From Guillardia theta CCMP2712 (Eukaryota > Protista > Cryptophyta): a stretch of 64,000 nt of DNA. The translations under genes and the position numbers were made by a program. The notes under the pieces are model-generated. The model worked only from the letters and a program-made list of their open reading frames with translations, did not search any database and had not been told where the DNA came from. Each line of letters opens with the position of its first letter. The stretch's first letter is position 1. Shown here one piece after another: positions 25,702-42,403 of this stretch. Location of the stretch: contig NW_005434670.1 of the NCBI RefSeq assembly GCF_000315625.1, positions 744,016 through 808,015 of the forward strand. The letters are read 5' to 3'.

Positions 25702-28663
25702 ATGAGGGGCTCTCGTCAGGATCCCGATGCAGGCTCCAAACCTGTTCAGCTCTTTCCTCTGCAAAAATGGATTCCGATATTGAAGGATGGGAGCAATTCT
25801 AGACCAGCGAATGGGAGCAAAGCATTCATAGAGCTGCCTAGCACAGTGCGACGGTTTTCGTATGAGGAGCTGTTGGTTGGAACTCAGAATCTCTCAGCGT
25901 CCCTTCTGGTGGGTCGTGGCGGCTTCGGACCAGTTTATCAACTCAAGGCCGATGGTGTTGAGTATGCAGTGAAAGTTGGAACGAACCTTCCCGACGCCGG
26001 GGTTGGACAGGGCAGGCATGAATTCGAGAACGAGGCTCTCCTCCTATGGATGTGGAAACATCCAAGAATTGTGAGCTTGGCCGGCGTAAGCGACGGTCAG
26101 TTCCCCTGTCTGATCTACGAGTACATGCCGGGGGGGAGCCTGTCCTCAGTCATCCATGACTCAAGACGGGCTGCACAGTTCGGGCCTGTCAAGAGGCTGA
26201 TGGTTGCTGCTGACGTCGCCAACGCGCTCATGTACCTGCACGAGGGAGGTCGGGGGGTGAAGCCGAAGAACAACAAGGTGAAGAAGGCTGTCGTCCTACA
26301 CCGTGACATAAACTCTTCCAACGTCCTCCTCGATCAGGATGGCAGGGGGAAACTCGGAGACTTCGGGCTGAGTGCGATGCTGCATGAGGTCGATGTAGAT
26401 AGCGGGATGGTCATGAGCGGCAACCAGGTGGTAGGCCAATGGGCATGGTCGGCACCAGAGGCCCAGGAGCTGGGAAACATGACGGCCTCGGACATCTACT
26501 CCTTTGGGCTCATTCTCCTCCAAATGCTCTCGGGCTGTGAGGACTCTATCCTGCCCACTGTGAGAATATCCGCTGCCATGCCAGGAACAGACCCTGTTCT
26601 GGACGATCGCCTGGCTCCTCACGACCCGTGGCCGGCTATGATATCTGAAGCGGTAAGCAAGCTGTCGTATGATCCTCGTACCTCGTGACTTGTCCATCTC
26701 AGGTCTTTGATCTGGCTTTGAAGAGCTCTGATCCTACCCCAGCCCGGAGGCCCACCGCGAAGCAGGCGCTGCAAGGGATTATGGCAGCCTTGCAGATGAA
26801 CGGGGCAGTTTATGTTTGCGATGAGCCCCAGCAGGTGAATGAAGATTTAAGATCTTCTTTCTCTCTTCTCGCCTTTGCTCTAGTCTCGGGTGCGACTCAC
26901 CATATCTTTAGGATCCACATTTCAACCATGCTCCGTTTGAGCCTTCTCGCATTGACCACAGTGGGACGGTGTCTACCTTGCTGCATTTCACTCAGGTATT
27001 CAGCTCCTTGGAGTATCCTTGACGTGACGCGAAGAGCAGGACAGCAACTTGAATGTCAAGGACAAGAAAAGTGGACACACGCGTCAGCGAAGCCTGGGTC
27101 CTGGCGAAGTGCGACTAGTCCCTTGGAACGGGCCAAGCACGAATGCTGCTAGCGCTGTCGACAACAAGAAGGCAGCGATACAATCTGTGATGATCTCAGT
27201 ATGGTTTGAAGAAGTTTTGACTGTTTTGTTGCAGGTTGTTTCCGTCTGCTGCTGCAGTGAAGAAGATGCTCGCCTGATGCTACAGGCGTGTCAATGGGAC
27301 GTCAACAGGGCCGTTGACAGACTGTTGAGCGGGGAGAAAATCCAACAGCAGCCGGAGGCACCTAAGGCTCAGCCACTGATGAACAGTGCTGTCTGCCCAG
27401 GTCTGGGAACGGGAAGTGGGCATGTGAAGATAGGAGACACGGAGTTCGAAGGGAGCTGGGTGAATGGTCGAGCTCACGGTCGGGGACGATTCATTGCCAA
27501 CGCGATCTCGTATGAAGGAGAGTTCCGCAACGGATTCATGCACAGCCGCGGGGTTTACAAGGCCCTAGATGGAAGTCTGGAGTATGAGGGCGAGGTATCA
27601 AGGTCTCTCCTTGACTTGCAAGCGCCTGATCGATGTTCTCGCAGTTTGTCGAAGGTTACATGAACGGTGAAGGGATCATTACCAAAGGGCCGGACCGTGT
27701 GAGGTTTCATTGTAAGTTCGATCGAGGTGTGTTGCTGTCGCAAGAGCCGTGCGCTGCGAAGCCAATGTTGACGGAGGACGAGAAGATGTTCATGATCTCG
27801 GTGTTCCAGTCCGTCGTCAGCAACAGCACCGAGCAAGAGGCTCATCGGTTCCTCTCCATGAGCTCTTGGAGCCTCCAGGATGCCATGAAGATTGCGCTGG
27901 ACACCAACCCTGACAGAGTTCTCTTCGACGGGAAGCCGCTAGAGCAGGAGGGAGCGAAATTGGGCAGAGTCTCAGATCAGAGCTCGAACGCTCGTGTGCA
28001 TGAGAGCCAGTCAAGCTCAGACGAGCAAGCAGTGACAGGAGCGACACGAGATAATGCACTAACTGCAGAGCAGGAAGCAACCAGGGGTGAGGCGAGGCAA
28101 CAGGACTCGGACTCGAGGAGCGACACGAGCAAGGGAGGAGATTCAAGCGGTGGGGAAGCTGGAAAGAGCGTGAAGAACCTCAATGAAATCCTCCAATCTC
28201 TTCCTCCGGGTTGGGAAATTCGAAAGGACCCGGCATCAGGCAGGATTTTCTATGTTGACCACAACACCAAGACGACCCACTGGAAGCCACCGCTGGAGGC
28301 TCTTGGTGGGAAAACGATTCAGAGCAGTACTCCAGAGAGAAGTGAAGTTCGGGGAGCGACAGGTATCTCTCTTATCTCCTCGCTGCATCCTTAACAAGTG
28401 GGGCAGGCGCGTCATCGCACGAGAGGGAGGAATCTGCGGGCGCGTCGAAGGGCAGCGGGGCAGGCGAGGAGTCTCTCGCCGATGTCCTTGAAAGGTTGCA
28501 GCTGAACCACATAGGCGCGATCCTTGAGAAGGAGGAGATCCGAGACATCAAGACGCTCTCGATGCTGTCGTCGCGGGATCTTAAGGACATGGGGATCTCA
28601 CAAGTGGAGGGGCAACGGATCATGGAAGAGATGATGCGGAAGCAGGTGATAAGAGGCAGATGA
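25702..28663 (+). CDS. IRAK/Pelle (RLK-like) protein kinase with UBA-like, MORN repeats, second UBA-like, WW and SAM domains
   Basis: [67 protein letters not shown]; [23 protein letters not shown] (UBA-like); [14 protein letters not shown] and [14 protein letters not shown] (MORN); [31 protein letters not shown] (WW); [41 protein letters not shown] (SAM, last exon about 28400-28663). Confidence 0.85.
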
Positions 28664-30519: not shown

Positions 30520-31560
30520 TGGCTGCACCGCCAGCGGCCCGCCCCAAACTTCGCCGCTCCCGACTCGGTGGCCCGGCCCCCGCCGAGCCTGAGTCAACTG
30601 GCAAGTTTCAAGTTCCGAAGCGGCTCCTTACCGTTCTTCAATCTCACTGCCACGGTTCCGAAGTTCGGGTGACGGTTACCGGGTTACTTCGCTCGGGCCT
30701 TTCTTCTACCGTACGGTACTCATTTCCTCCCAGGCTAGTCCCAAGCATGATCTTGAACCATCGGGCCGGGCCGGGGGCAGGCGACCGTACTACGGTACGC
30801 CGCCCCTAGCCGCTAATGTAGTACCGTACTCCTGGGCAGTGGCAACGCTCAGGCTCGGCGAGAATTGCTTTGTTCTCCATTAGCTTGGTGAGTTTTTCCC
30901 ATGATCAGCCTCCGAGGCTCCCCACCGTGAGTCACACAACTCGGAAGTCAGACAAGACGGAAGTGAGTTCAAGTTCGGAATCCAGAAGAGGTCATTCAAA
31001 GTTAAATTAATCAGGAGAGTCGAGGAGGCTTGACCCTGACACTGTCGCACTGGCCGCCCGCAACTTCGGCGCAGTCGGCAAAACGTCGCAGCGAGAAGAG
31101 AAAAGACAGCGAAAACCAAACCTACTATGCTGCCAACTGCCCGGGCCGGGACTCCAGGCGGGCTCCGAGATTGGGCCGGGCCGGGCCGCGGGGCCCCGGG
31201 CCGCCGGCCGTCGTTACTAAGTCAACACTGAGAACTGAGTTGTCCCGGTCCTCGTACTGATTTTTGACTTAACTTTGAGTAAGGAGACGTAGCATGAAGA
31301 AAAGGCAAAAAAGAAAAAAGAGGTAGGTGTGGTCGTAGAAGCCAGCGAAATTAGTGAAGTGGGGGGTTCAGTTTCGGGGGTGGGGTCCAAATTTGTGGGG
31401 TTGGGGAGGGTTTCTTGTGAAAATTCAGATGGGTGGGGTAAAGAAGATAGGTGAAACAGGGGTACTCGATTCGATATATATTGGAGGAAGGGGTAGGGGA
31501 CTACAGTAGTGCGATTGACTACCCCCACCCAGCACCGAATAATCCTCGCAGAGGGCAGGG
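30520..31560. other. Intergenic island 2: CCGG/GGCC-rich zone (30520-31215) then GGGT-rich zone (31320-31560), between divergent genes
   Basis: Dense CCGG, GGCC, AAGTT, CCGTACGG words followed by GGGGT/GGGTA runs; no credible ORF. Confidence 0.6.
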
Positions 31561-31807
31561 GTTATATTTTAGTTGATGTGCTCCATGTGGGGAAAAGCGA
31601 GAGGGGAAAGGGGGACAAGGGAATGAATACGAGAGCAGCAGAGGGGGGGAAGACGATGCCGCAAGGCATGCAGCTCTTTATCCAGACCGCAAGCATGGCA
31701 GATAACATAACGCCAGCAACTCAGATCTGACTCTCTTCGGAACTTTGACTGCAGTATTTGTTCCCACACATCCATATCAAATCTCTTGCATCCTTTCAGT
31801 TAAAAAG

Positions 31808-34365
31808 ATGCCCTCTGAGCAAAACGTTCTCACCAAGGATTCAAGTTTTGGAAATGATCCAATGACCTGCTTGCTGCATGACTTGTGCGCGCTCTCAGGA
31901 CTCGGCTATGCAGAATTTTGGAAGCGGGACAGGAGTGATGTCGATCTTGGGAAATCCCATGAGCCCTCAAATGACGAGCTGCCCTATGCTCGAGGTACAG
32001 ATGTAGGCCAGTCGAGCTCCATGCCAGGACAAGATGTAAATGCACGTTCTGAAATAACAGAATCACGCCATTCACGGACATTTCACAAAGAGGTTTCATT
32101 CGATGACAAGAACAAGTCCAATAGCCGCCCTGCCCATGATGATGTAAAAGCTCGTCGAGGAATTTCTCGTCGGGGGCTCGGTAACAGCAGTCGTTCGCAC
32201 ATGCCTAGCATATGTGAGATCAATGCATTTGAAAGAATCTCCATTGATCGAGTTTGGTCTAGCTTCCTTGACGATGATGGCCGAAGAATCTCTCCACATT
32301 CAAACCGGGGTGCATCGGTTGATCTGTGGCGGGATCTGATCGCAGTGCTGATGATTTTCTAGGAAACAAGCAGATCTAGAAAGGATCTTGAGCGAAAGGT
32401 ATGTGTTTCAAGTACAAAGTTCTGAAATTGAATAATCTTGGGTAGGCTAACATGGTCTGGATACGCTTACGCGCACCAAGACATGTTTGAGATCGCAGTT
32501 GAAAACTCTAAATGCAGTCATGTGATATTGTGTTTTAAAATGCCTGAATTTTTTTTGACGGATGTCAAAGGACTGGCCAAGTACAATAAAGGCGCTGGAG
32601 GAAGTTGCTAAAGATGATGTATGTGCGTATGAAGAAGGCCATGGCGTGATAGGAATGGCTTGGCAACAACGTCGGCCCTTTTGGTACGACATCGCTGCAT
32701 CGGTACTCTCCTACTGTTCTCAAATATATATGATGGATAATTTTCCAAACCAAGACTTCAGAGAATTCTGAGTCGTCGACGTTTGACGCAAGGATGTCAC
32801 TTGCAAAGGTGAAGATGCAACTGTAGTGAAATATGAGCTCAAGACACCCAGAACGTCTTCGATTTTTGCGTCGGGATCCCTGTGTTGCATCCACATTATG
32901 GTATTGTGGAAGGGGTGATCCTTTTCTTTCACCTGGACAACAAAAAGATAGAGCTTCCAGATGAGGTTTGTCCTGTGATGAATGGGCAAGATCATTCAAA
33001 CGGCTGCAGAATTGGAAACAATACATGAAGGACCAAAGCATCATGGAAATTTTGGCTCAAGCTTCTCGCACAATGTACTGGACGTACCATCTTGGGGTAG
33101 ATTTCATTGATTGCCTTTGAAAATCAATCACACTTTGCGCAGTCCTCCATGAACTCGTGGTTCAGTATGATTGATGCTCAGAAGATGAATTCTGTTTGAT
33201 TTCTTGACGCATTTTGGGTTTCCAGTAACTTTCGATGTAGGTCGCCTTGATAATGGGAGCAAATGACGATTCTAGGAGCAAGAACGAAGTTTTACCTCCC
33301 AAAGCATGGGACAAGCGAACGAGACATTTCTTGCGCAAATATTTTCGGAAATTCAAAGGCCAGGTATTTACGCATTGGTCCAATTCTGTGCCAATGCCTT
33401 CGTTTAGAATGCCACCCCCCCCGGGCCATACAGCTGGCAATACTCACTCTGGTCGTTCGTTGGGACGTACCTGGGTACCTTCATCATCACGGTGAACTTT
33501 GGACCGTTCAGTGCAAAGCTGACTTGCTTTTTCAAGTCGATCAGTAACTACATGAAGTATAACACAGATTATGGACAATACACAGCGACATTGTCAGATG
33601 GTATTCCAATCTTTTTAGCCAAAATAAGAAATTTACGATCCAACGTTTGCACAGGAACCCAAAAGATTGAACAGGGCTACGTTTTTCTTCTGATAAACTC
33701 AATGGGCGCTGTCTCTGCTATGCTTTTTTCAGTTCCGAGCTCGCCGTTGGCCCAGGCACATTCATATCGTACTCAACTTGAATTTTTCCTGATCTACTCT
33801 TGACAGCCGAGAAATGTTGTTTTTGGTCATTTGATAGCCGTCACTCTGGCCATTGCACTGGTATGATGAAAATCTTTTGCGCTTTCTTGCTGACATGACA
33901 ATCAAGGACTATCTGACCAACCCTCGTTACTTGCGTCTTTTCCCAAATGTGTGACAAGCACAAGCGATTATTCGAAATAACATTTCTGACTAGTGGGTCG
34001 GCGCTCCATTGGCTCCAGCTCTAGCAATTGGCATTCAAGCAAAGGTAGCTCCTCGGGTCATAGTTTTGTCTCATATTTCATAGCTGGGAATAATCCATCC
34101 GCCTTCGTGCTCCGCGTGTGTGATCTATACCATGGGCTTGCCTTACGTCAAGAACTTGGTAGCGTTTGCTCCCTTTGTCTTGCTAGTGTTGGTGAAATCG
34201 GTTGGCAGGGCTGGCTGTACTTGGCTTGTCCCGTTTTACTCGATTGTGTGGTACGCACATAACGCTGAATCTTTTGTTTCTGATGCCCACGAACAGCTCT
34301 TGGTCGTCGTGAGTTTGCTATTCAACAATCTTTCCAAGGACAGAAGTTATCCTCTTTACTGGTGA
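31808..34365 (+). CDS. GAF domain + HPP-family (NitM/NITR2-type nitrite transporter) fusion; many short exons; start approximate
   Basis: HPP part: KYFRKFKGQ|NATPPGPYSWQYSLWSFVGTYLGTFIIT...LLINSMGAVSAMLFSVPSSPLAQ|PRNVVFGHLIAV...APALAIGIQAK|LGIIHPPSCSA...GWLYLACPVL...LLFNNLSKDRSYPLYW*. GAF part: LHDLCALSGLGYAEFWK...AYEEGHGVIGMAWQQRRPFWYDI...FDARMSLAK|NVFDFCVGIPVLHPHYGIVEGVILFF. Confidence 0.85.
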
Positions 34366-34974
34366 CAACTGAATGAGTTTAGTGTATCAAGAGGCAGAGC
34401 GAAGTAACATCTTACCTGATGTTTATTCCTTCCGATTTTTCCGATTTTTGGATCATTACTGTACCCAAGTAAAGCTGAGATATCTGTCAAACATCATGGC
34501 ACTTTTCACAGTGGAATGGAATGAGACATCACAAAAGTAGTCTGAAGCATCTTCTCAGTGACTTGATTTCGGCATTCGCCCAGTCCGATGCCTCTCTCAA
34601 TTTGAAATTCCATGGTCAAGTCCTTCACAGCCATTGATCTAGCCCGCCTCCGGATTCCACATAAAGAATGCGATAGGGCAGTTCGAGGTTTTGCTACTAT
34701 ATCCACTCAGTCCGGTCATCTGCCTCGGATGTCTTCGGATACTACCGTCGTCGGCAACGAGATGGCGGCAAAGGGCATGCCAACCCTCCAATGCTGCTGA
34801 TCGCTCTGTGATCGCTCTTGTTGCATCCCATCATCATCTTTCTCTGACCACATAACGTTTCATTCATTCGCTATCGTCAAATTTGATTTCTCGACAAGTT
34901 CTTTCGAGAGATTGAATGTGAGGATGAAATACAAACAGCAGTTTTTGAAATTAACTTCAAAATCGCAGTGAATC

Positions 34975-37900
34975 ATGGGAGAGTTCGATGTCGGCATTTA
35001 CTTTCAGAGCTCGAGGCATGGAAGATGTCACACAGTCTCGAGACTCACTCCTGGAGGTAGCGACGATGATGAAGAAACCTCACAACTCATGCCGTGGTGA
35101 ATCATGTCAGGTCCGGCAGAGAAGTCCTGTGCCGTTGAGATCGGTCATCGCATTGTGATGATCAACGAGAAGGTATGAAATGAAGCTGCAGGAGGTTATG
35201 GGCACATTCAACTTGTGATCTTCCAGGACGTTTCGACTTCTTCGCTGCAAGAAGTTGAAACTTTTCTGAGGGGCCCGAAAGACTCCTTGGTCAACGTCAA
35301 ATTTCTTGAGATGAGGGAAATTCGATTGACGATGGAGAGATGCGTCAAGATTGAGGTGATCGAGGATCTTGATAGCGAGCAAGCTGAATCTTGATCGCAG
35401 AATTCTTATTCTGTTGGCATCATATGGAAAAGAGGGGAGGAGGGGCTGGTCGTCAGCGGAATATCCCCAGGTTGTGCAACAGCTACTGAACATCATCGCA
35501 TCCTTCTTACTTTTAACATGAACAGAATATTATGGATTCGGTGTGTTGCCGAAAGCCGGGGACAGGCTGCTGAAGATTGATGGGGAGGTTGATGTGTTGC
35601 GATGAAGCTGCCGCCTGAACCCTTGACAGAGCATCGAGTCGATGAGATTCGACGACATCACCATGAGGCTTGCTGGGCCGCTCAACACGAGCGTGAGGCT
35701 TGACTTCGCCCGAGGAGTTGCTCATCACACTGTGACGTTGAAGCGCGAGTTGTCAGCTCCTGCACGGGGCCTGACTCCAAGTGTGCTCGACCCTCAGATT
35801 GTGGACCTTCAGAGCAACGTCCGGTTGATCAACACCCAGCAAGCTCACAGCCATGCTCATCCTGGATCTTCGAGTGCCTGGGAAGTCTTCGATGAGCCAG
35901 AGCCAACCCCTGGGTCCAGAGTTGACCAACGAATGGTGGAGACGGGCAGGAGCCCAGCTCCTCTGACCTCGAGCTTCAACGACACGAGTGCTTCTAGCGC
36001 CCCCAGTGCTGTCACAACGAGGCCCTACGGTAGTTGGAAGACCTTCAACGAGCTTGCAGGTCTGGACAACAGAGAGGCTGAGAAGAAGAACACACTCCCT
36101 CCGCAGGACAGGAGCAACGAGGCCGATCCAAGGCGAGCTATGCCGTATTCGGCCAACACTCACCAGCCTGCTCATGGTTATCCGGTTCTTTCAGCCCCCA
36201 AGGTTCCTCAGGGTATCGAGAAAGGCGAATCAAATGCCGTTTCAAATGCTCAGTTGAATCACCTCCAAGAGGAGAACCGGACTCTTGCGAATGAGAAGAA
36301 ACTTCTCCGAGAGCAGTTGAATGAAATGAAGAACAATCTAACCAATGCCGAACAGACCCTAAGCAGGAAGGAAGCAGAGCTGAACAGCGTCAAGACTGTC
36401 CTCTCTCGCCGAGCAGAGGCTGCGGGTGAGACAAGGCGGCAGATTGAAGATCTGTCTGCTACCATCGTGTCATTGAACGAAGAGAAAACCAACCTTGCTC
36501 TCAAACTCGACAAGACGTCATCTGACCTCAGTCAAGCTAGAGCTCAGATACAGGATCTTCAAGACTTGAGGATCTCAGAACGACAGAAGCTGCAAGACGA
36601 TGCTGACTTTCAGATGAGGAGAAGGTTTGACGACTACACAAGGCAGATAGAAGCTTTGAATGCGGACCTTCACACCCGCGATGAGCAAGTGAAGATTGCG
36701 CAAGGCAAGGTCAAAGAGCTGAGTCAGGCTCTTGTCGATGAGAAGAAATCCCTTGAAACCTCAGAAGGACAGCTGGCAGTGGCGAACAACGAGATCATCA
36801 GACTACAGCAGAATCGCGCTGAGCTGGAATCGAGTCATAAGGATCTGCGATCGCGGTATGAAGGTGTGGTGCAGCAGTTGAACGTGCAGCAGGTCAAGAA
36901 CTCAGAGTTGATCGATGCGGCAAGAGAACAGGAAAATAACATGGAAGCGCTCAAGGCTTCCAACGAGAAGGTGTTGGAGGAGATAAGACAGCAGCTGGTG
37001 GCTCAATCTGATGACTTCATGCGAGTCAAAGAGGAGATGCAAAGATTGCACTTGCAAGAGCTCGAAGATATGAAAGAAAAGCACCAGATTGCGATCGATG
37101 AAATTCGACGAGCCCAGGCCGACGCGGATACCAAGGCTCAAGATTATGAGAAGAGGATCCAAGAAGTTGAAGTTGCAAACAGAAGCCTTTCAGCTGAGTT
37201 GCAAGAAGCAGAAGCTTCCTACAGAGAGAACATGGTGGACATGAAAGAAAGGCACGAGTCAGAGTTGGCTGAGCTACAACAGAAGCTTGATGTGACCATG
37301 AACAAATGCGAGAAGTTGAATGAGGCGTGCGCTAATTTCAAAGAGCAGTTGGCTAACGCCAAACGAACGATTGAGGCGCAAGCGCTTTCATGTCAAGAAG
37401 AGCGAAAATGTACGGAAGACTGGCAGCAGAAGGCAGAGAAGAGTCAAGCTCAAGTGCAATCACTCGAAGAAGAGTTGAGAAATACCCACCAGCTCATGAT
37501 TCAGCTGGATATTTCAAGTACACGATTGAGGCTGCTGGAGCAATTCCAGCAGAGAATTCAGTTCGAGGCTCACAAGAAAAGTGAGCAGATACGGCAGCTA
37601 CAAGGAAACTTGCCCTACGCGCAGCTGGGAGGCATGCTGCAAGAAGCGCATGTCTCCCTAACGTCTCTACAGGAGCTCGCTGAGGTGCGGGAGAAAGAAG
37701 GTGCTCTTTTTTGCTGTCTCTGGAACTTCTGACTAACAATCATCTGTTTTACGAAATTGTGATCACACACTTCCACTTCAAGTTGGTAATGATTGCATTC
37801 TCTTTTGATCTAAAAATTGAACATGATTTCAGGTTTCTACAAGCAAAAGTTGAATGAATTGATGAACGCAAGGGAAATGGGTGTGGAGACTGAAAAGCAG

Positions 37901-38674: not shown

Positions 38675-39556
38675 TCATGAAAGTTTTGTTTCATTCACGG
38701 CTTTTGATAAAGATCCACGGGACCTGCCGAACGCGAAGACATCAACCCCCTCCTTCTCCTCGCTCTCCTCGATGATGCACATGAGAGCCTCGCCCGCGCC
38801 CTCCTTCCTCTCCTCATGGAGATCTACCGGGGAGACAGGAACGAACATAGACTTGAAAGACTCCAGCACGCTATCTGACGTCTCTACCATGGGCTCTCTA
38901 GCCTCATTCCATGTCACGCTATACCTGTCATGCCCGTACTCAGGTGGGACCACTGGACAGCCTAACGCCCCTCACCTCTTCTTGTGCGACATGATGAACA
39001 CAGCATGAGGGAGTACCTCAAAGAGTCTTCGAACCGCCGAGTGCAAGAGTTTGGCCATGTGCGAGGAGTACAGCAGGTCGCTTCCCACGATGATGCTCAC
39101 GTCGGAGCCTCTCCCGAAGGCGTCGAAGTGTTCGTCGTTGCTCCAGTCCAGTTTGCATTCCACACACTTCCCGTCAAGACCGTTCAGCTGGATGTTAGCT
39201 CGAATAACCTCCAGCACAACCTCATCATAGTCAGAGATGTACACTCTCCTCGCCCCCAGCTTCGAGAGGACCATACCAAGGATCCCTACCCCCGCTCCGA
39301 TCTCTAGGACAGCCGCGCCTCTGAAGAGGTTGCTGTTCTTCATGCAGTACTCGCAGAGCTTCTTTGTCGCCCCTTGCCAGACATCGAGACCGATCAGGTC
39401 ACTGTCATCGTCACACCTCAACCCCGCCATGACCAACTTTACTCCCTCATCTACCGCCATCTCTTCCATGTCCAACTCTTGCTCACAAGCTGGATCACTG
39501 GCAGGGTCCCCCTGCTGCTCTGCTCTTGTTGACGGCTCCTCTTCTTGATCTACCAT
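38675..39556 (-). CDS. SAM-dependent lysine/histidine methyltransferase, family 16 (METTL21/23-like)
   Basis: IGLDVWQGA, VLEIGAGVGILG, ISDYD, CKLDW, IIVGSDLLY; one intron near 38975-38925 joins the C-terminal exon; alternative start at 39658. Confidence 0.88.
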
Positions 39557-39851
39557 ACTCCCCTCCTCCTCCTCCTCCTCCTCCTTCTCCCCTGGAGCTC
39601 GTCTGCACAGAGCGCGCACCTCCTGCCCGGCTACCCTCACACGCATTAGGCGCAGCATGGCTGGTATAAAATACAAGCCAGCCTCGGAATGCTTTATTAG
39701 AAAAGCAGAAGAGACAGCAAAATTACGAGGACTTGAAGCGTGTGAGATTCCAACTTGACGGCTCTTGGGCAAGGAGATCGCAGTGGCGAAGAAGAGCAGG
39801 GAGGAGCGGTCTTAGTGAGAGAGTCAGCAGGAGAAGCAAGAGAACGAGAGC

Positions 39852-40866: not shown

Positions 40867-42403
40867 TCAGCACACTCCATACGTGTACGGGGCAGAGGAT
40901 GTATCCTCCATCGCTTGCAGTGGTACAGGGTCATCGATCAAGACTGCTTCCCCTTGCTTGTGAACTAGTCGACCTTTCACCCACACCATTGCGACATTCA
41001 CCTCCGAACCGAGGTTGATTAATTTCTCAAGGAGGTGCATGGACGAGTCCGAATCCCACACGTCTATCCCCCCCCTCGCAGCATCCAGCAGCACAGCGTC
41101 GAAGCTCTTCCCTGCCTCCAAGGTTCCCACCTGCCCTTCAATCCCCAGAGCCTTCGCCCCTCCCATGGTTGCCAGGTGAAACGCGTGTCGCCAGTCTAGC
41201 AGCTCGTCGCTCTTGATAGGTGCGAAGTTTCTGGTGACCTGATGGGCGATGACGGCGTTTCTCATCGAATTGAGCATGGAGGGGCTGTATCCTCCAGCTA
41301 CATCGGTGCCCAGAGCGACCTTGTTCCCAAGAGCGACGATCTTGGCGGTCGGCAAGACTCCATCGGCGAAGAAGAAGTTGGAGAGCGGACAGTGAGAGAT
41401 GCTCGTTCCCCGTTGCCGCAGCGTGCGCAGGTCCTCATCGTCCAGGTGAACCCCGTGTGCCATGATCGTCTTGTCGTGCAGAAGTCCGCAAGTGTCGAAG
41501 ATGGTCGTGTCGGACTTGAGGTGGGGATACCGCGACTTCACCATGGCGATCTCGTCCAACGACTCTGAGATGTGAGACTGCACGTGACAGTCATACCTGT
41601 CCGCCAGCGCGCCCAGACCATTCAACAGCTCCATGCTGCAGCTGGGAATGAACCTCGGGGTTACCACTGGATGGACAAGCTCGCTTCCCAGGCCTCGCAC
41701 GGACTGAATGAACCTCTCCGTGCTCTCCAGCGACTCCTCCGTGCTCTCAATGTAGTCTGCCGGCGCCAGGCTGTCCATGCAGACCTTACCGATGTATGCT
41801 CGCTGACCTCGCGAGGCCGCAAGCTCAGCAAACGCTATGCAGGACTGCAGGTGGATCGTAGCAAAGTAGAGAGCACAAGTCGTTCCATTCCTCAGCGTCC
41901 GATCGATGACGGACGAGTAGACTCGCTTCGCTGTCTCCACGTCTCGCAGACTGCTCTCGGCCGGGAACGTGTACTTCTGCAGCCAGTCCATGAGGGGGAG
42001 GTCAGTCGCTGTCCCCGTGTAGGAGTACTGCGGCGCATGGATGTGCGTGTCGATGAAGCCAGGCACAAGCATCTGGCCCCTCTCAAGCTTCACAAGCTCG
42101 ATGCCCCACTCCTCGTTCAACACGCAAGAGCCTGCTGCCCTGCCCTGCATCCACAGCCTGACTGGCTCGTCCTCCAGCTCCTTTAGTCGCGTCACCACAA
42201 TGATCTTGCCTCTCTGATCCACCACCAGAACAGCTTCCTCCATCACGTCGATCTGCAGCGAGAGCTTCAGACCAGCTCGCAAGCATCCTCCCCCTCACCT
42301 TGCCGTACGCGGTTGCGTGCGCCATGGTACCAAAGATTACCAGCCGGGCATCCGCCTCGACCCACCTGATCGGCACCTGCGGGTGGCTGCCGCTGACTCC
42401 CAT
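40867..42403 (-). CDS. GDA: Guanine deaminase (amidohydrolase superfamily)
   Basis: PGFIDTHIHAPQY, DWLQKYTFPAE, NGTTCALYFATIH, VTPRF, SHISE, AHGVHL, SHCPLSN, LGTDVAGG, LATMGGAKAL; first exon MGVSG...FGTMAHATAYGK spliced at about 42298/42256. Confidence 0.95.

Follow-up and report, generated by a model that had tools for sequence, protein, structure and literature searches.

A 64,000-nucleotide (nt) stretch of the nuclear genome assembly of the cryptophyte Guillardia theta CCMP2712 (contig NW_005434670.1, positions 744,016 to 808,015 of the forward strand; the window hereafter, with positions counted from its first letter) contains a gene of 19 exons for a 571-residue protein, in which an N-terminal GAF domain and a C-terminal HPP membrane domain are joined in one chain. 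It is practically certain that this GAF-HPP architecture is real. The architecture is conserved, undescribed and unannotated. With modest confidence, the protein is read here as a ligand-gated transporter, i.e., as a membrane protein of the HPP family that would be under the control of its own GAF domain, located at the N-terminus and in the cytosol.

Transcript, domain order and relatives

In a preliminary description made from the letters of the DNA, GAF and HPP motifs were placed in one reading frame after splicing between positions 31808 and 34365. Transcripts agree with this to the nucleotide, the frame being an open reading frame (ORF) of 571 codons. The region 31200-35000 was covered with four public RNA-type runs, and transcript contigs were obtained from X1, X2 and X3, which belong to three studies. 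Each of these three gave a single assembled contig of 2037-2049 nt, starting at about 31606 and ending at 34488-34491, so that both halves of the protein were found on one transcript. The contigs skip 18 short joints, of which 14 were listed directly and four were placed from the contig coordinates; the four derived joints all have GT-AG or GC-AG ends. Over the whole gene, the introns are 39-54 nt long, 17 of the 18 being of the GT-AG type and one of the GC-AG type. Raw RNA reads of X19 cover the 3' end only, where the last two joints are confirmed independently, and in four of these reads a run of A follows position 34491, the poly(A) site.

The spliced translation equals the protein P0017 letter for letter; this protein comes from a 2049-nt MMETSP contig, where its ORF carries the label 'type:complete'. 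As the frame is open across 19 exons and equal to an independent transcriptome ORF, it is not a product of chance. P0017 was recovered by exhaustive profile search only and was missed by word-indexed protein searches. Records of the exact 571-residue protein exist in MMETSP/JGI only, NCBI and UniRef having none; the locus may lack a reference annotation or have a mis-spliced one. No ATG upstream of 31808 occurs in the main frame of the spliced transcript. A short upstream ORF lies in the 5' untranslated region (UTR) and may exert control over translation of the main ORF.

The full protein was modelled with AlphaFold2 on an alignment of 21 relatives. In this model, the GAF domain with a disordered loop is followed by a helix of about 55 residues, a short disordered stretch, a basic amphipathic helix and the HPP domain with about six membrane helices. 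The first helix (residues 18-30) and the first strand (residues 34-42) of the GAF domain are predicted with high confidence; W38 is kept in 15 of 16 family members and R40 in 13 of 15. The GAF motifs are YAEFW (residues 34-38), EEGHGVIGMAWQQRRPFWYDI (212-232), FDARMSLAK (245-253), CVGIPV (259-264) and VEGVILFF (272-279), and those of the HPP domain are SPLAQPRN (457-464), HPP (515-517) and NN..R.YP.YW (559-571). The disordered insert had been estimated at roughly 150 residues. It actually comprises 109 residues (44-152) with a predicted local distance difference test score (pLDDT) below 50, and the overestimate probably arose from reading through the 49-nt intron 32214-32262. At the junction with the membrane domain, the motif Y..K.KG is found, with Y371, K374 and G377 nearly invariant across the family. 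An output domain was detected in the window protein neither by Pfam nor in the AlphaFold2 model. Because the first GAF helix begins at residue 18, a signal or transit peptide would not fit ahead of it; as judged from the model and from the lack of an earlier in-frame ATG, an N-terminal targeting leader is absent, as had been proposed for a plastid leader.

A profile of the N-domain was compared with 1.84 billion representative proteins and gave 138 hits at E<0.001. About 30 clusters (50% identity) carry an HPP domain downstream, whole or in part. Non-fragment hits below E 1e-10 are nearly all found among these HPP-carrying clusters, and the other hits are bacterial multidomain sensors. The named members are all cryptophytes, i.e., Guillardia theta, Hanusia phi, Hemiselmis tepida and Rhodomonas salina, and further members come from marine metagenomes and transcriptomes without an organism name. 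In the 87.1-Mb assembly of Guillardia theta CCMP2712 (669 contigs), five GAF-HPP loci were found with the N-domain profile, on contigs 4 (the window), 12, 75, 92 and 125, and at all five the HPP part lies on the same strand. The paralogue on contig 75 corresponds to the NCBI 'hypothetical protein GUITHDRAFT_143489' at 99-100% over the compared segments. The loop that links GAF strands 1 and 2 is a hot spot: one subfamily lacks it, the window protein has 109 residues in it, and in others it reaches several hundred.

Public records name the proteins of this family only as 'HPP transmembrane region domain-containing' or 'hypothetical'. Full-text searches of the literature library at hand found no paper joining HPP with GAF or HPP with Guillardia, in keeping with the earlier remark that no description of the fusion was known. 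Since the N-domain is invisible to Pfam and the records mention HPP at most, annotation of the family can be improved. The P0005/P0157 subfamily is intron-free on compact, intron-poor metagenome contigs with 58% G+C (L015, 4267-5595; ENA ERZ17087806, a 24-kb contig). One member of the cluster is filed in NCBI as a partial protein of a Promethearchaeia metagenome-assembled genome, probably a mis-binned eukaryotic contig. For Rhodomonas salina, the EukProt model P0012 and the Logan ORF P0014 are unspliced read-through versions of the P0006 gene; the public model of this species is therefore wrong past the first exons.

HPP domain and proposed control of transport

The HPP domain, which had been called full from its motifs, is complete by the Pfam model TM_HPP (PF04982): the match reaches E 3.6e-35 and 121.3 bits against a cut-off of 27.2 and covers profile positions 4-157 of 157. 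It is the sole Pfam domain in the window protein and is matched by all 21 relatives. Membrane helices are predicted in the AlphaFold2 model at residues 388-415, 435-453, 462-483, 493-511, 517-534 and 538-559. Residues Q461, P462, R463, P516 and P517 are invariant in the 21 members, and H515 is nearly so. According to a passage of PMC4137279 that cites Maeda et al. (2014), AtNITR2;1 of Arabidopsis has a Km of 13 uM for nitrite, and its knock-out reduces nitrite uptake by chloroplasts. Within the HPP family, nitrite transport is known only for AtNITR2;1 and a cyanobacterial member.

Both of these transporters have in common with the window protein the full-length TM_HPP match and the motifs SP..QPRN, HPP and NN...R.YP.YW. 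They are short, whereas in the window protein a putatively cytosolic GAF module of about 375 residues stands ahead of the HPP domain. Plant NITR2;1 also bears a transit peptide for the plastid and lacks a sensor domain, while the window protein has no leader. A regulatory pair of CBS domains is found on HPP proteins in the prokaryotic HPP-CBS fusions (COG3448). As proposed for the window protein, these fusions unite an HPP membrane domain with a regulatory domain that binds ligands on the cytosolic side, although the CBS pair is C-terminal and the fusions are prokaryotic, and the GAF domain is N-terminal and occurs in eukaryotes. By analogy, the GAF-HPP protein would be the eukaryotic counterpart of the HPP-CBS fusions.

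In the proposed mechanism, the GAF domain would remain on the cytosolic face, and a small cytosolic ligand would bind in a pocket formed by the conserved helix ends G-x-x-G-(L/M)-A-W and D-x-R. The ligand state would be relayed via the connecting helix, upon which the HPP pore would open or close. As there is no leader, the protein would probably enter the endomembrane system through its first membrane helix. In cryptophytes, this system includes the outermost plastid membrane; that the five paralogues sit at different membranes is speculation. A sensor fold on the cytosolic side, a long helix and a conserved junction, with no output domain present, suggest that transport is controlled allosterically, and they do not suggest signalling. 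The Y..K.KG junction and the connecting helices are conserved, and regulation of the HPP domain by the GAF domain is considered fairly probable. The term 'transceptor', which had been suggested for the protein, does not hold as worded: there is no output domain, and a sensor on a transporter points to gating.

Nitrite or a similar small anion is proposed as the cargo because nitrite transport is the only tested function of HPP proteins. The only basis is the homology with NITR2;1 of Arabidopsis and with the HPP protein of a cyanobacterium, and the chances that the cargo is nitrite are evenly balanced. Alternatively, the HPP domain could transport another small solute or serve as a membrane anchor, in which case the link to nitrogen would be coincidental. 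In favour of this, nitrite transport was shown for only a few HPP proteins, there are five divergent paralogues in one genome, and a nitrate-assimilation gene is absent nearby. In addition, the HPP domain could not be placed relative to NITR2 or the cyanobacterial protein: genome scans yielded no relative, and the alignment with prokaryotic HPP proteins was too variable for placement. However, every HPP signature motif is intact and the Pfam match is full-length, and a function other than nitrite transport is regarded as unlikely, if by no means negligible.

Several points weigh against the ligand-gated transporter. Ligand binding by the GAF domain and transport by the HPP domain are, in this family, functions deduced from sequence and models. 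None of the Pfam GAF models reaches E 0.1 on the window protein. Among solved folds, the N-domain of plant MYC proteins comes closest, though narrowly, and it binds peptides and not small molecules. The tyrosine that acts as a lid in NreA and NLP proteins is apparently Asp in 18 of the 21 members, as read from the alignment register. Searches with the full model found no solved structure matching the membrane domain, which was not searched alone; this bears on the choice between a channel and a carrier. Finally, a nitrate-assimilation gene cluster around the gene was considered and rejected, as the neighbours encode a protein kinase, a protein with WW and UBA domains, a methyltransferase and an amidohydrolase.

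The passage of nitrite across membranes, and its matching to nitrate reduction against toxic nitrite build-up, is poorly understood in all algae, and particularly so in algae whose plastids are enclosed by four membranes. If a transporter has a sensor domain of its own, it would offer a direct handle on the control of this flow. The GAF domain lends itself to separate expression and ligand screening, and the HPP half to a test in Synechococcus elongatus NA4, the cyanobacterial strain deficient in nitrite uptake in which the plant protein was studied.

Kinship and putative pocket of the GAF domain

The N-half had been read as a GAF domain from its motifs, and structural and profile comparisons confirmed this. 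Foldseek with the full-protein model returned matches to GAF domains only, and VIA-align also gave GAF matches. The N-domain of a paralogue, modelled without the loop (pLDDT 81, predicted template-modelling score 0.83), showed the GAF fold again. The profile of the N-domain family matches bacterial PAS/GAF sensor kinases annotated as GAF_2 by Pfam, and hhalign relates the family to these bacterial GAFs with 99.7% probability. With Pfam GAF, GAF_2 and GAF_3, sub-threshold matches were obtained in two of the 21 relatives (best E 0.019), and P0017 gave no match at E<=1; as these models stay below the cut-off, the GAF homology is visible at the profile level only. Outside the family, the GAF profile finds its best sequence matches in bacterial PAS/GAF sensor kinases and cyclases of the GAF_2 type, which have kinase, cyclase or HD output and never an HPP membrane domain. 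The PDB sequence search with the family profile produced chance antibody matches only, and the NCBIfam models included nothing relevant to the family.

Nitrate is bound by the GAF-type domain of NLP7. For the nitrate site of NreA, passages of a preprint describe the indole of W45 on strand beta2, the backbone NH groups that L67 and A68 offer at the end of one helix and that of I97 at the end of another, with Y95 as a lid and G66 and P96 lining the pocket; in the Y95A variant, regulation was lost. NreA is reported to complex nitrite too (PMC12423327). This site was mapped onto the HPP-linked family via the alignment register and the order of structural elements, not by superposition. The first helix end is G219-M220-A221-W222 (family consensus G-L-A-W), G219 being kept in 20 of 21 members and W222 in all of them; from the order of structural elements, the consensus G-L-A would equal G66-L67-A68 of NreA. 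The second helix starts with D246-A247-R248 (family consensus D-P-R; D in 18 and R in 16 of the 21), at the place of Y-P-I in NreA and Y-L-R in the cryptophyte NLP-like proteins. The beta2 aromatic at the place of NreA Trp45 is W169 in the window protein, whereas the family as a whole has F, W, Y or H there, Trp occurring in only five of 21. Thus, the two-helix-dipole geometry fit for an anion is plausibly retained in the model, and the lid tyrosine of NreA and NLP proteins appears from the alignment not to be. NreA (PDB 4IUK, 4IUH, 6IZJ) differs from the window protein in being a free protein of 155 residues with the kinase NreB as its target; the place of its Tyr95 is apparently taken by Asp in the window protein, and no sequence-level match between NreA and the HPP-linked family was obtained in the PDB profile search.

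The GAF domain might be a nitrate or nitrite receptor of the NLP7/NreA type, which would make the protein a one-component sensor-transporter of nitrogen oxyanions. For the paralogue model, Foldseek ranks plant bHLH-MYC N-domains highest, followed by NreA and the NreA-based nitrate biosensor NitrOFF. The Atlas shape search has in its first row a Streptophyta cluster with 99% GAF_NLP (template-modelling (TM) score 0.67), and the Streptophyta GAF_NLP cluster stands at rank 2 by language-model features. Cryptophyte NLP-like GAFs are found by hhalign with 96.6% probability (E 5e-10, 122 columns). Also consistent with such a receptor are the G-(L/M)-A correspondence, the position of Trp169, the pocket faced by two helix N-termini as in NreA, and a partner domain from a nitrite-transport family. 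The NKFDE-type motif is a mark of cyclic-nucleotide GAFs, and no NKFDE-like pattern (N[KR][FYVA][DN][EQ]) was found in the 21 members.

Against this, the bacterial rows of the Atlas search score 0.65-0.68, and the structural scores are equal across GAF kinds, including bacterial sensor GAFs. Pfam GAF_NLP (PF22922) matches none of the 21 family members at E<=1, although an RWP-RK gene of the same genome, taken as the positive control, is matched with 32.9 bits. The 138 profile hits include no RWP-RK protein, and neither they nor the family contain an RWP.RK motif. The Asp at the lid position and the rarity of the beta2 Trp speak against the receptor as well, and the mapping of both is by register. 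An oxyanion receptor of this type is therefore viewed as possible but doubtful. As a candidate ligand, nitrate or nitrite has the greatest appeal and would be physiologically sensible; since the pocket differs and its residues do not favour these anions, the candidate is given a low probability.

The GAF domains of NLP7 and of the cryptophyte NLP-like RWP-RK proteins (L013, P0173-P0177) are homologous to that of the HPP-linked family, and the blocks G-I-P-G-x-x-W, R...A and V-A-V-P-V align. NLP-like proteins have an RWP-RK domain, which binds DNA, and a GAF_NLP match, whereas the HPP-linked GAFs lack this match. In hhalign, bacterial GAF_2 domains are closer to both the HPP-linked family and the NLP-like GAFs than those two are to each other, the probabilities of 96.6% for the NLP-like and 99.7% for the bacterial domains coming from alignments of unequal depth. 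The preliminary suggestion that the domain is most like the NLP-type GAF therefore stands in part. NLP GAFs are indeed among the nearest, but they tie with bacterial GAFs, no family member matches GAF_NLP, and the lid position appears to differ. The answer is mixed, and membership in the same broad branch as NLP and NreA, and nothing more specific, is partly supported.

A genuine NLP-like gene is present in Guillardia theta (L013, 1372-2733; G000:C77:92517-93878, + strand), with an N-terminal GAF_NLP domain followed by the motif RWPHRK. Its relatives P0173-P0177 carry PF22922 and PF02042. NLP-type regulators are thus present in cryptophytes, and the relation to the NLP-type GAF, together with true NLP-like RWP-RK genes in the genome, bears on the age of the nitrate-sensing GAF. 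In the boldest version, the proteins would form a cryptophyte-specific family of nitrite channels gated by cytosolic nitrate or nitrite, with a GAF domain from NLP7/NreA stock and with paralogues at different membranes of the four-membrane plastid. This is quite unlikely; if true, the protein would be the first transporter known with a built-in nitrogen-oxyanion receptor of the NLP7/NreA type.

It is also conceivable that the GAF-like domain binds no small molecule and serves as a dimerisation or protein-docking module similar to the N-domain of plant bHLH-MYC proteins. It could then hold HPP subunits together or recruit a regulator, and the Ser-rich loop could be a target of phosphorylation. 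The best structural matches include the N-domains of MYC3 and EGL3, which bind JAZ or MYB peptides; the long helix after the GAF domain is as in dimeric GAF modules, and the insert is disordered and rich in Ser and Arg. However, the most conserved residues (G219, W222, D246, R248 and F256) lie at the usual elements of a GAF pocket and not on the surface, and the length and sequence of the insert vary wildly among relatives. A docking module is for these reasons improbable. That the fusion is an assembly artefact or read-through of two adjacent genes can be practically dismissed: although the mid-gene transcript evidence comes from assembled contigs and not from raw reads, the same contig was obtained in three studies, the frame is unbroken across 18 junctions, and four paralogues and other genera, including intron-free genomic ORFs, show the same architecture.

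Gene features and surroundings

Table 1. Positions in the window of the GAF-HPP gene, of the elements of its transcript and protein, and of large neighbouring ORFs (aa, amino acids; CDS, coding sequence).
Feature	Position	Strand	Details
Whole transcript	31606..34491	+	2044 nt spliced; contigs of X1, X2, X3 and X19 poly(A) reads
5' UTR, 202 nt	31606..31807	+	In-frame stop 36 codons before the main ATG
Upstream ORF, 35 codons, four in-frame ATGs	31623-31730	+	Inside the 5' UTR
CDS, 571 codons and stop, 19 exons	31808..34365	+	ATG 31808, stop 34363-34365
Exons 1-10	31606-32213, 32263-32317, 32363-32398, 32446-32521, 32571-32702, 32755-32808, 32852-32965, 33010-33096, 33143-33193, 33241-33363	+	
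Exons 11-19	33408-33491, 33537-33600, 33655-33755, 33807-33860, 33907-33948, 33994-34044, 34084-34158, 34209-34250, 34297-34491	+	
GC-AG intron, the only one in the gene	33756..33806	+	Cuts the most conserved HPP block between SPLAQ and PRN
GAF helix alpha1 and strand beta1, aa 18-42 (LL.D.C...G..YAEFW.R)	31859..31933	+	pLDDT 94
Disordered Ser/Arg/Asp-rich insert in GAF, aa 44-152, 109 aa	31937..32312	+	pLDDT <50; intron 1 inside
GAF core, complete alpha/beta, aa 153-281, exons 2-7	32313..32935	+	AlphaFold2; Foldseek and VIA-align GAF matches
G-V-I-G-M-A-W, aa 216-222, most conserved GAF motif, helix N-terminus	32643..32663	+	Family conservation
Long connecting helix, aa 289-344	32957..33261	+	AlphaFold2
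Basic amphipathic pre-membrane helix, aa 359-376, ending in Y..K.KG	33304..33357	+	AlphaFold2
HPP transmembrane domain, aa 386-568, exons 11-19	33429..34353	+	Pfam PF04982
His-Pro-Pro motif, aa 515-517	34096..34104	+	Translation
Protein kinase domain ORF	25702-26688		Large neighbouring ORF
WW and UBA-like protein ORF	27633-28394		Large neighbouring ORF
Lysine methyltransferase-like ORF	38972-39772	-	Large neighbouring ORF
Amidohydrolase ORF	40867-42282	-	Large neighbouring ORF

At position 31266, in the 3' end of the transcript of the upstream neighbour, all four RNA-type runs have A and the assembly has G; the mismatch may reflect a difference between strains, an error of the assembly or editing. 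Between the upstream gene and the GAF-HPP gene, at about 31130-31215, the DNA is G+C-rich and consists of repeated GGGCCGG/CCGGGCC-like units.

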